Assembly (NCBI GenBank): GCA_965240325.2
Contig: OZ251250.1
Coordinates: 496,001-560,000 of the forward strand
From: Rebecca billardiae RCC1528
Lineage: Eukaryota; Protista; Haptophyta
Direction: 5' to 3'
Length of the DNA: 64,000 nucleotides
Shown here in pieces: positions 2,374-30,426 of this stretch. The notes below the pieces were generated by a model. That model was given only the letters and a program-made list of their open reading frames with translations. It had not been told where the DNA came from and searched no databases. The first letter of the stretch is position 1, and each line of letters begins with the position of its first letter. The position numbers were made by a program, and so were the translations under genes.

Positions 2374-3885
2374 ATGGTCGACCTGAAAAGCCGCAAGTGT
2401 GATCACACGGGCTGCACCACGCAGCCTCACTTCGGTCTGGCAGGCGACGCGCGCGCCAGCCGGTGCGCTGCGCACAAGCTGGCTGGCATGGTCAACGTTA
2501 CGAACCGCAAGTGCGATCACACGGGCTGCACCACGCAGCCTTCATTCGGCATGCCGGGTGACGCGCGCGCGAGCCGGTGCGCTGCGCACAAGCTGGCCGG
2601 CATGGTCGACCTGAAGAGCCCCAAGTGCGATCACACGGGCTGCATCACGCAGCCTTACTTCGGCATGCCGGGTGACGCGCGTGCCAGCCGGTGCGCTGCG
2701 CACAAGCTGGCCGGCATGGTCGACCTGAAGAACCCCAAGTGCGATCACACGGGCTGCACCACGCGGCCTCACTTCGGCATGCCGGGCGACATGCGTGCCA
2801 GCCGGTGCGCTGCGCACAAGCTGGCTGGCATGGTCAACGTTACGAACCGCAAGTGCGATCACACGGGCTGCACCAAGGAGCCTTCATTCGGCATGCCGGG
2901 TGACGCGCGCGCGAGCCGGTGCGCTGCGCACAAGCTGGCCGGCATGGTCGACCTGAAGAGCCCCAAGTGCGATCACACGGGCTGCACCACGCAGCCTTAC
3001 TTCGGCATGCCGGGTGACGCGCGTGCCAGCCGGTGCGCTGCGCACAAGCTGGCCGGCATGGTCGACCTGAAGCACCCCAAGTGCGATCACACGGGCTGCA
3101 CCGCGGGGCCTTCATTCGGCATGCCGGGTGACGCGTGGGCCAGCCGGTGCGCTGCGCACAAGCTGGCCGGCATGGTCGACCTGAAGAACCCCAAGTGCGA
3201 TCACACGGGCTGCACCACGCGGCCTTCATTCGGCATGCCGGGCGACGCGCGCGCCAGCCGGTGCGCTGCGCACAAGCTGGCCGGCATGGTCGACCTGAAG
3301 CACCCCAAGTGCGATCACACGGGCTGCACCACGCAGCCTTACTACGGCATGCCGGGTGACGCGCGTGCCAGCCGGTGCGCTGCGCACAAGCTGGCCGGCA
3401 TGGTCGACCTGAAGAGCCGCAAGTGCGATCACACGGGCTGCACCACGCAGCCTTACTTCGGCATGCCGGGTGACGCGCGTGCCAGCCGGTGCGCTGCGCA
3501 CAAGCTGGCCGGCATGCTCGACCTGAAGCACCCCAAGTGTGATCACACGGGCTGCACCACGCAGCCTGCGTTCGGCATGCCGGGTGACGCGCGCGCCAGC
3601 CGTTGCGCTGCGCACAAGCTGGCCGGCATGAAGAGCCATCGGAGTTCAGGTCGGCACAAGCGCGGGCTGCAGCAGGACATGAAGAGCCCCAACGAAGTGA
3701 CGAGCGCCGCCAAGCGACAGCGGAAGCGCGCCAGCAGCACAGCCACTGCTCCGGACGTTGTGGCAGCGCGGCGGCCGCGATCATCGCAGCTGCCGCAGCT
3801 GGTCACAGCCAGCGTCGTCTCGACGCCGTCGTGTGAACGACCCGTGGTGATGGCCAGGCGTGTGACCGGGGGGAGCCGGGCCTGA
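2374..3885 (+). CDS. EsV-1-7-like Cys/His repeat protein, copy 1 (11 repeats of C-x4-C-x16-C-x2-H, basic NLS-like C-terminal tail)
   Basis: ORF 2290-3885; first in-frame ATG at 2374 (start uncertain, an upstream exon is possible). Unit CDHTGCTTQPxFGMPGDARASRCAAHKLAGMVDLKxxK resembles the EsV-1-7 cysteine-rich motif. Tail contains KRQRKR. Confidence 0.8.
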   Translation: MVDLKSRKCDHTGCTTQPHFGLAGDARASRCAAHKLAGMVNVTNRKCDHTGCTTQPSFGMPGDARASRCAAHKLAGMVDLKSPKCDHTGCITQPYFGMPGDARASRCAAHKLAGMVDLKNPKCDHTGCTTRPHFGMPGDMRASRCAAHKLAGMVNVTNRKCDHTGCTKEPSFGMPGDARASRCAAHKLAGMVDLKSPKCDHTGCTTQPYFGMPGDARASRCAAHKLAGMVDLKHPKCDHTGCTAGPSFGMPGDAWASRCAAHKLAGMVDLKNPKCDHTGCTTRPSFGMPGDARASRCAAHKLAGMVDLKHPKCDHTGCTTQPYYGMPGDARASRCAAHKLAGMVDLKSRKCDHTGCTTQPYFGMPGDARASRCAAHKLAGMLDLKHPKCDHTGCTTQPAFGMPGDARASRCAAHKLAGMKSHRSSGRHKRGLQQDMKSPNEVTSAAKRQRKRASSTATAPDVVAARRPRSSQLPQLVTASVVSTPSCERPVVMARRVTGGSRA

Positions 3886-4016
3886 GCAGCAGCATCACAG
3901 CTGCGTCGTCGTCAGGACGGCACGGGCACCCGGCACCGTAAGGCAATCTCGCCCGCCCGCTGAGCTGTGAGTGCCGGTCCGTCTTCAGTCTGCCGTTAGG
4001 CGTAGTTAGTCATTAA

Positions 4017-4137
4017 TATATATATATATATATATATATATATATATATATATATATATATATATATATATATATATATATATATATATATATATATATA
4101 TATATATATATATATATATATATATATATATATATAT
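4017..4137. repeat. (TA)n microsatellite, left flank of copia element
   Basis: Direct reading, about 60 TA units. Confidence 0.97.
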
Positions 4138-4376
4138 TGTTGAGCTGACGCAGCCTGGGGCGCGCATCTCAGCAGATGGCGTCGCCGCTGGGACGTCAGG
4201 GCCGGCGCCGCACCAGGCGGGCCGGCGGCATCAGCTACGGAGCAGTGGCTGGCTTTATGGCGGCGCCGGAGGCGGGGTCAGATTGCCTCGGTGGGCGTCA
4301 TCGTCGACGCGCCCGGCTACGCGCCGGTGAGCTTTTAGCAGGGCTCGACACGCTCGGAGCTCGCGTTTACCCAATA
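4138..4376 (+). repeat. 5' LTR (internally deleted, 239 bp)
   Basis: 4138-4256 matches 10349-10467 and 4275-4376 matches 10993-11094; an 18-bp filler replaces 525 bp. Confidence 0.93.
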
Positions 4377-28200: not shown

Positions 28201-29064
28201 CGGCCGGCCGCACGCCCGACCGACGCGCCGCCGGCGGCTGAGGCGCGACGGCGGCTGCGCGCGCCTGCGCGCGCTGCTTGAGCGCGCGCACCTCGACCGG
28301 GAAGCTCGCGTCCATGCCGCAGAAGGCTGCGTCGATCGCGTCGAGCTCTGCGGCGCGCGCGGCGCGCAGCGCAGCCGCAGCCTGGCCGACAATCTTGTCG
28401 TGCGCGAGCAGGTGCTGCACGACGGTGAGCACGGCGTCGGCGGTCATCCATGGCACATGCGACAGATGCGGGCGACCGAGCTTATGCTTGCCCGCACGCT
28501 GCGCTTCGGTCAGCTGCCTGCGGTGCGTCTGGGTTTTGAGCAGCAGGTAGTGAGTCGGCGCCGTGAGTGCCGCGGCGCCAATGCGCACGGCTTGCAGGAG
28601 CCGGCCGTCCACAAAGCGCACGGGGCTGGTGAAGCTGTGCGGGAACCAGCACGGGGCGAAGATCGCAAAGAGTAGGCGGTCAGACGCCTGCGCATGCCAC
28701 GCGCTCGGCAGTATGGCCTCGTTGTCCGCCGTGAGCGCGAGCGCGTACACGTCGAGGCCGCCGGCCGAGATGACGAGCTCGGCGTCCCACTCTTCAGGGT
28801 TGTCGTCTTCGAGGAGGAGGTCGATCTGGGGCAGAGATGGCAGCGCGGCGCTCGCCTGGCCCTCGTCAGGCTGCGAGCTCATCCGCGCGGCAGCTTCGAG
28901 CAGCGTACCTCCCGCCGTCAGCGCCGCAGGGCAGCGGCGGCCACAACCTCGCGAGGGCCGAGGTCCAACGGACTCGCAGAGGCGGGCAAGGGGTGCGCCG
29001 CGACGGGGGGGGGGGGTCGCGGCGCACCTCGCTCGCCCGATCCCGAGGGTTTGCTCCCCAAGCC
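25214..29064. mobile_element. DNA transposon-like element with perfect 32-bp TIRs
   Basis: ggcttggggagcaaaccctcgggatcgggcga (25214-25245) is the reverse complement of 29033-29064. Target duplication is GGA, or CGGAG/CCGGAGG if the ends are drawn 1-2 bp further in. Confidence 0.85.
26473..28882 (-). CDS. Element-borne hypothetical protein (~783 aa) with HMG-box-like C-terminal region; putative intron 27541-27598
   Basis: MSSQPDEG starts at 28882. A 58-nt GTGGGC...GCGCGCAG intron joins it in frame to ORF 26473-27474, which contains P..AINAATLFRNAH...AQRKAKEAWANLSP...ERKRYE (HMG-box pattern). Confidence 0.6.
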
Positions 29065-29256
29065 GGAGGACTTTCAACTTCACGGACACGCTGAGCTGCC
29101 CGGCCGGAGCGCCGGCGATATCGAGCCGATACCGTCGTACAGGGGAAGTGACGTTCGAGTCTGAAAAGCGTCGGCGTGGGTGCTCGTCAACTCGAGGCGC
29201 GCGCGACGGCGGGCGCGGCCAGGGTCGTGGTCGCCTTCCCAGCCAAGCTGGCCGGC

Positions 29257-30426
29257 ATGGTCGGCCTGAAGAGCCGCAAGTGCGATCACACGGGCTGCAC
29301 CACGCAGCCTTACTTCGGCATGCCGGGCGACGCGCGTGCGAGCCGGTGCGCTGCGCACAAGCTGACAGGCATGGTCGACCTGAAGAGCCGCAAGTGCGAT
29401 CACACGGGCTGCACCGCGCGGCCTTCATTCGGCATGCCGGGTGACGCGCGTGCCAATCGGTGCGCTGCGCACAAGCTGGCCGGCATGGTCGACCTGAAGC
29501 ACCCCAAGTGCGATCACACGGGCTGCACCACGCGGCCTTACTTCGGCATGCCGGGTGACGCGCGTGCCAGCCGGTGCGCTGCGCACAAGCTGGCCGGCAT
29601 GGTCGACCTGAAGAGCCCCAAGTGCGATCACACGGGCTGCACCGCGGGGCCTTCATTCGGCATGCCGGGTGACGCGCGTGCCAACCGGTGCGCTGCGCAC
29701 AAGCTGGCCGGCATGGTCGACCTGAAGAGCCGCAAGTGCGATCACACGGGCTGCACCACGCAGCCTTACTTCGGCATGCCGGGTGACGCGCGTGCCAGCC
29801 GGTGCGCTGCGCACAAGCTGGCCGGCATGGTCGACCTGAAGAGCCCCAAGTGTGATCATGCCAGCTGCACCACGGGGCCTTCATTCGGCATGCCGGGCGA
29901 CGCGCGCGCCAGCCGGTGCGCTGCGCACAAGCTGGCAGGCATGGTCGACCTGAAGCACCCTGAGTGCGATCACACGGGCTGCACCACGCAGCCTTACTAC
30001 GGCATGCCGGGTGACGCGCGCGCCAGCCGGTGCGCTGCGCACAAGCTGGCCGGCATGGTCGACCTGAAGAGCCGCAAGTGCGATCACACGGGCTGCACCA
30101 CGCAGCCTGCGTTCGGCATGCCGGGTGACGCGCGCGCCAGCCGGTGCGCTGCGCACAAGCTGGCCGGCATGAAGAGCCATCGGAGTTCAGGTCGGCACAA
30201 GCGCGGGCTGCAGCAGGACATGAAGAGCCCCAACGAAGTGACGAGCGCCGCCAAGCGACAGCGGAAGCGCGCCAGCAGCACAGCCACTGCTCCGGACGTT
30301 GTGGCAGCGCGGCGGCCGCGATCATCGCAGCTGCCGCAGCTGGTCACAGCCAGCGTCGTCTCGACGCCGTCGTGTGAACGACCCGTGGTGATGGCCAGGC
30401 GTGTGACCGGGGGGAGCCGGGCCTGA
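29257..30426 (+). CDS. EsV-1-7-like repeat protein, copy 6 (8 repeats)
   Basis: ORF 29176-30426, first ATG 29257; tail and 3' flank most like copy 1. Confidence 0.8.
   Translation: MVGLKSRKCDHTGCTTQPYFGMPGDARASRCAAHKLTGMVDLKSRKCDHTGCTARPSFGMPGDARANRCAAHKLAGMVDLKHPKCDHTGCTTRPYFGMPGDARASRCAAHKLAGMVDLKSPKCDHTGCTAGPSFGMPGDARANRCAAHKLAGMVDLKSRKCDHTGCTTQPYFGMPGDARASRCAAHKLAGMVDLKSPKCDHASCTTGPSFGMPGDARASRCAAHKLAGMVDLKHPECDHTGCTTQPYYGMPGDARASRCAAHKLAGMVDLKSRKCDHTGCTTQPAFGMPGDARASRCAAHKLAGMKSHRSSGRHKRGLQQDMKSPNEVTSAAKRQRKRASSTATAPDVVAARRPRSSQLPQLVTASVVSTPSCERPVVMARRVTGGSRA

Follow-up and report, generated by a model that had tools for sequence, protein, structure and literature searches.

The EsV-1-7 family (PF19114) includes the EsV-1-7 protein of Ectocarpus siliculosus virus 1 and IMMEDIATE UPRIGHT (IMM) with its brown-algal paralogs. 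According to the parts of the published accounts available to us, this family is among the largest of brown algae, where it forms large tandem gene clusters and includes a developmental regulator; it is common in giant viruses and a viral origin has been considered possible. In the same parts of the literature, the Ectocarpus members are described as lacking any other domain and no biochemical function is assigned to the family. Here we describe six genes of this family (g1 to g6) from a 64,000 nucleotide stretch of contig OZ251250.1 (positions 496,001 to 560,000; hereafter the window, to which all coordinates below refer). The six genes share with the known members the same unit, its arrangement in tandem, the lack of any other Pfam domain and the tandem clustering of genes. 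However, they differ from them in that the host is haptophyte-like, the units are homogenised to the level of a minisatellite and the diversity is limited to five positions. The IMM-type N-terminal domain is absent from the window proteins, which also have no in-frame ATG upstream of the Met in their first linker, and due to the absence of this domain the six genes are not regarded as IMM orthologs.

Other close relatives are proteins in which an EsV-1-7 array is fused to a nuclease-like domain, such as the homologs P0001 and P0022 and the proteins annotated as "Endonuclease" from Faunusvirus and cedratvirus. These fusions resemble the window proteins in that the array begins at the linker Met, unit numbers differ, and variation within an array falls at the same positions of the unit. 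In contrast, the window proteins end in a basic tail of 89 aa, and the nuclease domain (with its RRPD, E-x-D-E-x-Q-H and RFNPD motifs) was not found in any of the six by Pfam searches.

Two further systems are comparable in their manner of evolution. The PRDM9 gene and the KRAB-ZNF clusters encode C2H2 fingers with a unit of 28 aa (C-x2-4-C-x12-H-x3-5-H), and they resemble the present locus in consisting of a coding minisatellite, in the concerted evolution of a scaffold that carries a few diverse residues, in changes of unit number and in tandem clustering. However, the unit in the window is 38 aa long with C-C-C-H ligands, its binding to DNA is a prediction, and no Pfam match to zf-C2H2, SET or KRAB was obtained for the six proteins. 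The repeats of TAL effectors are helical, metal-free and 33–35 aa long, with two variable residues (12 and 13). The likeness in this case extends to near-identical tandem units (6–12 or more), a few fixed variable positions, special end units and a C-terminal motif resembling a nuclear localisation signal. No relation in sequence or fold to TAL effectors is indicated, as there was no match to TAL in Pfam, none in the PDB, and the structure model of the g3 array is nearly devoid of helix. Hence, the parallel with TAL effectors, PRDM9 and KRAB-ZNF drawn in the first-pass annotation of this DNA holds for evolutionary behaviour, whereas the six proteins are not members of those families.

On balance, the evidence presented below slightly favours the view that g1–g6 encode nuclease-free, nuclear, modular DNA-binding proteins, whose specificity is predicted to be determined by the composition and order of their units. 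The locus presents the EsV-1-7 domain in its cleanest form, with six natural variants side by side, and together with the nuclease fusions found in relatives it makes the function of this domain directly testable. Possibly new in this work are the haptophyte-like host, the extreme homogenisation which exposes the variable positions, the recurrence of these positions in different lineages, and the functional clue that the link to nuclease fusions provides.

Six EsV-1-7 arrays and their cassettes

Tandem Repeats Finder detected six arrays of 114-bp units on the plus strand, with 91–93% matches and no indels within single arrays (Table 1). A regular-expression scan of the window for the motif C-x4-C-x16-C-x2-H identified 11, 12, 6, 6, 10 and 8 copies in g1 to g6, respectively. 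All 53 of these units are on the plus strand with a spacing of exactly 38 aa, which corresponds to the motif plus a linker of 12 aa, and apart from one chance out-of-frame match the motif was not found elsewhere in the window. The four ligands are intact in every unit (212 of 212 residues), and this conservation suggests that they bind zinc. The Pfam profile PF19114 (EsV_1_7_cys) was matched by all six proteins in 6–12 stretches each, with scores of 260–534 bits against a Pfam cut-off of 25 bits (E 5.7e-79 to 1e-164), and the structure model of the g3 array matched the BFVD model of EsV-1-7 (Q8QNQ2) with an E value of 2.6e-23. By profile score, motif and predicted fold, the six genes are thus members of the EsV-1-7 family. 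An exact look-up of the g6 protein in public assemblies gave no record.

Most of the anatomy proposed in the first-pass annotation is borne out by these results. The six co-oriented genes with their unit numbers were recovered by the repeat search, the open reading frames (ORFs) and the motif scan, and the identification of the repeats as EsV-1-7 agrees with the profile search. The span that had been proposed (2374 to 30426) runs from the ATG of g1 to the end of the g6 stop codon. The genes had also been described as pure arrays with no catalytic domain; Pfam searches of the six proteins found none, and in a tblastn search with the tails of homologs, which would also reveal a nuclease remnant near the locus, nothing outside the arrays was seen among the matches listed. 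The constant tail with the motif KRQRKR is likewise confirmed. It is a basic, Ser/Ala/Arg-rich stretch of 89 aa, of which about 200 nt do not differ between any of the six genes, and the tails occur in two slightly different versions. Based upon this basic motif, the six proteins, which are presumably expressed, are probably nuclear.

Each copy consists of an ATG-free leader followed by the array, about 270 bp of tail coding sequence and about 130 bp of conserved 3' sequence. The leader (126–200 bp) is common to g2–g6, and g1 retains only 38 bp of it. The window contains exactly six such cassettes and no stray units. The cassettes of g2, g3, g4 and g5 are arranged head-to-tail with gaps of 4–24 bp, a copia-type retrotransposon and other sequence lie between g1 and g2, and g6 is located 7.5 kb past g5; the flanking sequences differ among g1, g2–g5 and g6. 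The predicted proteins are 313–540 aa long with isoelectric points (pI) of 9.6–10.0. Their predicted start is the first in-frame ATG, which has a good context (GGC ATG G) and encodes the Met of the first linker. The 199–420 nt that precede the proposed starts are devoid of ATG in every frame, and this is true of all six copies, even of g1, whose leader is unrelated; the linker Met is also the start in the gene models of many homologs. The sequence PAKLAGMV.LK, previously interpreted as a separate partial repeat, in fact belongs to the first full unit, as its linker, and contains this ATG. We have also considered that g2–g5 might be one long spliced gene, and this seems less likely, as each cassette has its own stop, ATG-free leader and start in good context. 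In g4, a 7-bp insertion in a G run just 5' of the usual stop changes the last residues and lengthens the tail. Downstream of g6, fragments of the leader and 3' region were observed at 30700-31000 and 31357-31403, and these may be what is left of the start of a seventh, decayed cassette.

Table 1. Positions of the arrays, the six genes with their cassettes, and the retrotransposon in the window (CDS, coding sequence; LTR, long terminal repeat)
Feature	Positions	Strand	Details
114-bp arrays	2361-3630; 15413-16796; 17402-19380 (two arrays); 19981-21136; 29244-30171	+	Tandem Repeats Finder
g1 coding	2374..3885	+	predicted ATG to stop; 11 units, array 2362-3615; 503 aa, pI 9.6; leader remnant 2336-2373
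g2 cassette	15300..17199	+	leader 15300-15425; CDS 15426-17048, 12 units, 540 aa; tail and 3' region 16782-17199
g3 cassette	17223..18502	+	leader 17223-17414; CDS 17415-18356, 6 units, 313 aa; tail and 3' region 18087-18502
g4 cassette	18508..19796	+	leader 18508-18693; CDS 18694-19695, 6 units, 333 aa
g5 cassette	19800..21560	+	leader 19800-19993; CDS 19994-21388, 10 units, 464 aa; tail and 3' region 21122-21560
g6 cassette	29101..30532	+	leader 29101-29256; CDS 29257-30426, 8 units, 389 aa; tail and 3' region 30157-30532
Ty1/copia-type LTR retrotransposon	4138-11095	+	between g1 and g2; gag zinc knuckle, RVT_2

Variable positions and the exchange of units

Five of the 38 positions in the unit (10, 11, 20, 21 and 23) hold 58% of its amino-acid entropy. 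Positions 10 and 11 are located three and two residues ahead of the first Cys, and positions 20, 21 and 23 are found two, three and five residues after the second Cys; because the scaffolds at this locus are near-identical, these few varying residues stand out. The residues observed at them are R, Q, N, H, K, E, S, Y, A, G, L, P, T and M. Among these, R, Q, N, H, K, E, S, Y and the small residues are typical of base contacts, and the variable residues may read the target. In comparisons between units, the ratio of nonsynonymous to synonymous diversity (piN/piS) was 1.84 at the five variable codons versus 0.26 at the other 33. The synonymous diversity between units was 0.10 in comparison to a replacement diversity of 0.026 at scaffold codons, which indicates that the units are under purifying selection. 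The five positions were chosen after looking at the window, and a retest was made with four positions set beforehand from other lineages, for which piN/piS was 1.53 versus 0.31 elsewhere. It can be safely stated that the scaffold is under strong purifying selection and that the variable sites diversify at least as fast as neutral ones. The coding status of the arrays rests on the ratio of 0.26 at scaffold codons together with the Pfam match. It had been noted earlier that all frames are open across the arrays, which is correct; however, this carries no evidential weight alone because antisense frames across the arrays are likewise open (e.g., 15121-16947 and 26861-30325, both on the minus strand).

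Among the 53 units, 37 are distinct, with 28 distinct five-residue codes, and the string of units is unique to each of the six genes, as the first-pass annotation had claimed. Units from the same gene differ on average as much as those from different genes (8.95 vs 8.71 of 114 nt), and identical units were found in different places, viz. g1.9 and g3.2, g1.10 and g6.5, and g2.3, g4.2 and g5.7 (numbered by gene and unit). Additionally, g2.7 and g2.8 are identical, indicating a fresh duplication, and the last three units of g2 and g4 are the same; g4 looks like a deletion derivative of g2. The first and last units of the arrays are position-specific. The arrays thus act as a coding minisatellite with exchange of units among paralogs.

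Near-identical 114-bp units in tandem cassettes of 1.3–1.9 kb are hard to assemble, and the 7-bp change of g4 is located in a G run. These features could raise the suspicion that only one or two real genes exist and that errors of assembly have created the differences in unit number and order. However, every array is in frame, the differences are structured, with position-specific end units and shared blocks, and the flanks of g1, g2–g5 and g6 are not the same. Further, sequence of the same organism is present in two public runs (ERR14847148 and ERR14847152), and one public short-read contig of this organism matches the region adjoining the locus (32366-34897) at 100%, though it does not extend across the arrays. 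In view of these observations, we consider an artefact of this kind to be very improbable.

The variable positions are not peculiar to this locus. A search among 5.8 billion proteins identified 108 homologs, of which the closest is only 57% identical, from metagenomes, the dinoflagellate Effrenium voratum, Coccomyxa, brown algae and viral metagenomes. Arrays that have been homogenised independently, comprising those of five Effrenium proteins, two C-x2-C variants, and P0001, P0012 and P0022, vary at the homologous positions. The set derived a priori from Effrenium (positions 10, 11, 21 and 23) ranks 3, 5, 2 and 1 of the 38 positions in the window, for which P is ~7e-5.

The C-terminal domain of relatives and the ligand of the arrays

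A conserved C-terminal domain of about 150–190 aa is present in 52 of the 108 homologs. Its invariant features are an Asp, a Glu-x-Asp-Glu, a His, an Arg and an RFNPD-like motif. A structure model of this domain has a predicted local distance difference test (pLDDT) score of 81.6, and its leading matches in the PDB by Foldseek are almost only nucleases of the PD-(D/E)XK fold, including archaeal Hjc, the R2 endonuclease domain, McrC, Bax1 and several restriction enzymes. On the basis of these matches the domain is predicted to have a PD-(D/E)XK nuclease-like fold, with scores that are weak though consistent. Comparison of the homologs' tail with PHROGs gave nothing useful. The domain belongs to a family of 7567 representative clusters at E <= 1e-3, and in the best 149 of these it is always at or near the C terminus, preceded by 0–16 EsV-like motifs. 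Among the 26 members with one EsV-like motif or none, Pfam detected fingers of the C2H2 type in several, and one has a primase C-terminal domain. In addition, the array model matched predicted viral structures annotated as "Endonuclease" from Faunusvirus, cedratvirus and pithovirus-like genomes. The EsV-1-7 array is thus the habitual N-terminal partner of a domain with this modelled fold, which can also use C2H2 fingers in its place.

The closest homolog, which carries the nuclease-like tail, is encoded on a densely coding 15.2 kb contig with 66% GC (L001; JGI metagenome 3300034050), where it adjoins a gene for the small subunit of ribonucleotide reductase; this contig may represent a GC-rich giant virus with a host resembling the organism of the window. 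The contigs of two homologs carry giant-virus genes (a Pox_A32-like ATPase, a deoxynucleoside kinase and ribonucleotide reductase). A different type of tail is present in a further 17 homologs, mostly from Effrenium, and it had no match in Pfam or the PDB, nor in a profile comparison with the first type. Within each of two Effrenium-type groups (P0040/P0070/P0071 and P0005/P0084/P0100) the members share one longest-contig figure (728,389 and 184,706 bp, respectively), and these shared figures suggest clusters of multi-copy array genes with the second type of tail in a dinoflagellate genome. The N-terminal extensions of ten other homologs contained no Pfam domain except for one LisH.

Based upon these results, we propose the following model. 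Whole cassettes duplicate in tandem, the six genes being young paralogs of one cassette, and the 114-bp units are duplicated, deleted and exchanged within and between arrays while the scaffold is held constant. Amino-acid diversity is retained at positions 10, 11, 20, 21 and 23, which may form the surface by which each unit reads its ligand. The ligand is most plausibly DNA, and the array would then be a DNA-targeting module. If the variable residues read the ligand and this ligand is DNA, the target site would be set by the composition and order of the units, each contributing its own code. In the relatives from giant viruses and dinoflagellates, the same kind of array would aim the C-terminal nuclease, whereas the window proteins, which are without a nuclease, would bind their sites in the nucleus and not cut them, serving as regulators, repressors or site blockers. 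That specificity derives from the units and their order had been suggested in the first-pass annotation, and it now receives indirect support from the fixed variable positions, their recurrence in distant lineages, the shuffling of units and the nuclease-fold partner.

Several considerations weigh against such a role in DNA binding. The excess of replacement changes at the variable codons (piN/piS above 1) is statistically insecure, with p = 0.10 in a Fisher test of the counts of variant states, and the variable positions could simply be those loop positions at which the fold, in every lineage, tolerates most change. Among solved structures the array model has no relative, and its comparison with the PDB yielded nothing significant (best E ~1). 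With regard to the C-terminal domain, the best Foldseek match has an E value of 3.6e-3 (probability 0.98), and a profile of the homologs' tail found nothing significant in the PDB and Pfam, other than a sub-threshold Pfam match of one protein to REase_MTES_1575; hence, the nuclease assignment rests on the fold search. Lastly, the fusions may have another role than the six window proteins, in which the nuclease is absent.

The main rival explanation is that the arrays are protein-binding or other non-nucleic-acid scaffolds similar to LIM or RING domains, in which the variable positions are the least constrained surface loops. In favour of this view, the excess of replacement changes is insecure, and the weak PDB matches of the array model are to generic zinc modules (the Cys-rich region of EHMT2, LIM and GATA). 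In addition, Ectocarpus IMM, the sole family member studied genetically, has no known biochemical activity. However, a mini-domain of 38 aa is mostly surface, yet 33 of its positions are near-frozen across the 53 units and five are free. The recurrent partner of the arrays in relatives is a nuclease-fold domain that also pairs with C2H2 fingers, and the six proteins are strongly basic. A scaffold of this kind is therefore considered unlikely, while being the alternative that deserves most attention. The modular binding of RNA, in a manner resembling PUF or PPR proteins, is less probable still. Short zinc knuckles often bind RNA, but the domain fused to the arrays has the predicted fold of DNA-cutting enzymes, its alternative partners are C2H2 fingers and a primase C-terminal domain, and the tail of the window proteins contains a basic motif of nuclear type.

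The preferred reading of g1–g6 as modular DNA-binding proteins can be extended, tentatively and with more doubt than attaches to the six genes themselves, to the family as a whole. EsV-1-7 arrays might constitute an unrecognised modular system of DNA recognition, in which the residues on either side of the first Cys pair allow each unit to read a small, fixed number of base pairs. In giant viruses such arrays would serve to aim mobile PD-(D/E)XK nucleases, and algae would have repeatedly domesticated nuclease-free versions of them, represented here by a fast-shuffling repertoire of six genes. If this is true, it would explain the expansions of the EsV-1-7 family and provide a targeting mechanism for the mobile nucleases of giant viruses. 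The arrays would also offer a new programmable DNA-binding scaffold, and the fusions would be natural counterparts of engineered zinc-finger or TAL nucleases.

Host and genomic surroundings

Of about 40 ORFs from across the window that were tested, matches were obtained only for copia, a DEAD/MZB helicase, a DEX1-like protein and a homolog of C2orf69, whose closest named relatives are from Pavlovales sp. CCMP2436 (58%) and Diacronema lutheri (55%). The window is eukaryotic nuclear DNA from a haptophyte-like host. No giant-virus marker was found among the ORFs tested, and the possibility of a viral insert was rejected on this account. In view of this nuclear context and the lack of such markers, the six genes form a gene family of the host, and the locus is no obvious insert of viral DNA.

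A related possibility is that the locus is a remnant of a giant-virus gene that was recently amplified and has no host function, the frames being open only through the youth of the copies. The closest homolog is found on the virus-like contig of 66% GC, and the tails and leaders are near-identical between copies, which indicates that the duplications are recent. However, the excess of synonymous over scaffold replacement diversity noted above speaks for purifying selection on the units, all of the zinc ligands are intact, no stop or frameshift is present in any of the 53 units, and the markers expected of a virus were not among the ORFs scanned. Hence, we consider it improbable that the genes are a remnant without function.

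The copia element between g1 and g2 is flanked by (AT)n tracts at 4016-4137 and 11092-11196. Segments of its two LTRs (4138-4256 and 10349-10467; 4275-4377 and 10993-11095) are 100% identical, and its insertion into an AT microsatellite is therefore very recent. Its RVT_2 domain is split over two frames near 8922-9088, and the 3' LTR includes about 0.5 kb of additional sequence, in which a 43-bp tandem repeat is present. A role for the six genes against viruses or transposons had been raised in the earlier annotation. Nothing in our results supports either, and the copia element is a neighbour only.

A number of other features of the window were also observed. The long ORFs located between the cassettes, at 11498-13546 (plus strand; 683 aa) and 22044-29173 (minus strand; 336–770 aa), have no Pfam match and may be novel genes or chance ORFs of GC-rich DNA. 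The helicase (42773-47981, minus strand) contains DEAD and MrfA-type zinc-binding (MZB) domains, and its best matches are actinobacterial-type proteins (48–55% identity). Such an affinity is uncommon for a nuclear gene of a eukaryote, and the helicase may be of bacterial origin. Within this minus-strand ORF, a run of 117 TGC triplets on the plus strand (45526-45876) corresponds to about 115 consecutive alanines, and the run may either encode poly-Ala or represent an intron or a microsatellite. The GC content is 78–80% at 44000-54000 and 62000-64000, in comparison to 60–70% elsewhere, and these blocks contain many short GC-rich tandem repeats and ORFs that are open in all frames. Lastly, (AT)25 followed directly by 32 copies of TATTAG is present at 42356-42600 and a run of 38 C at 31539-31576, both with no obvious role.

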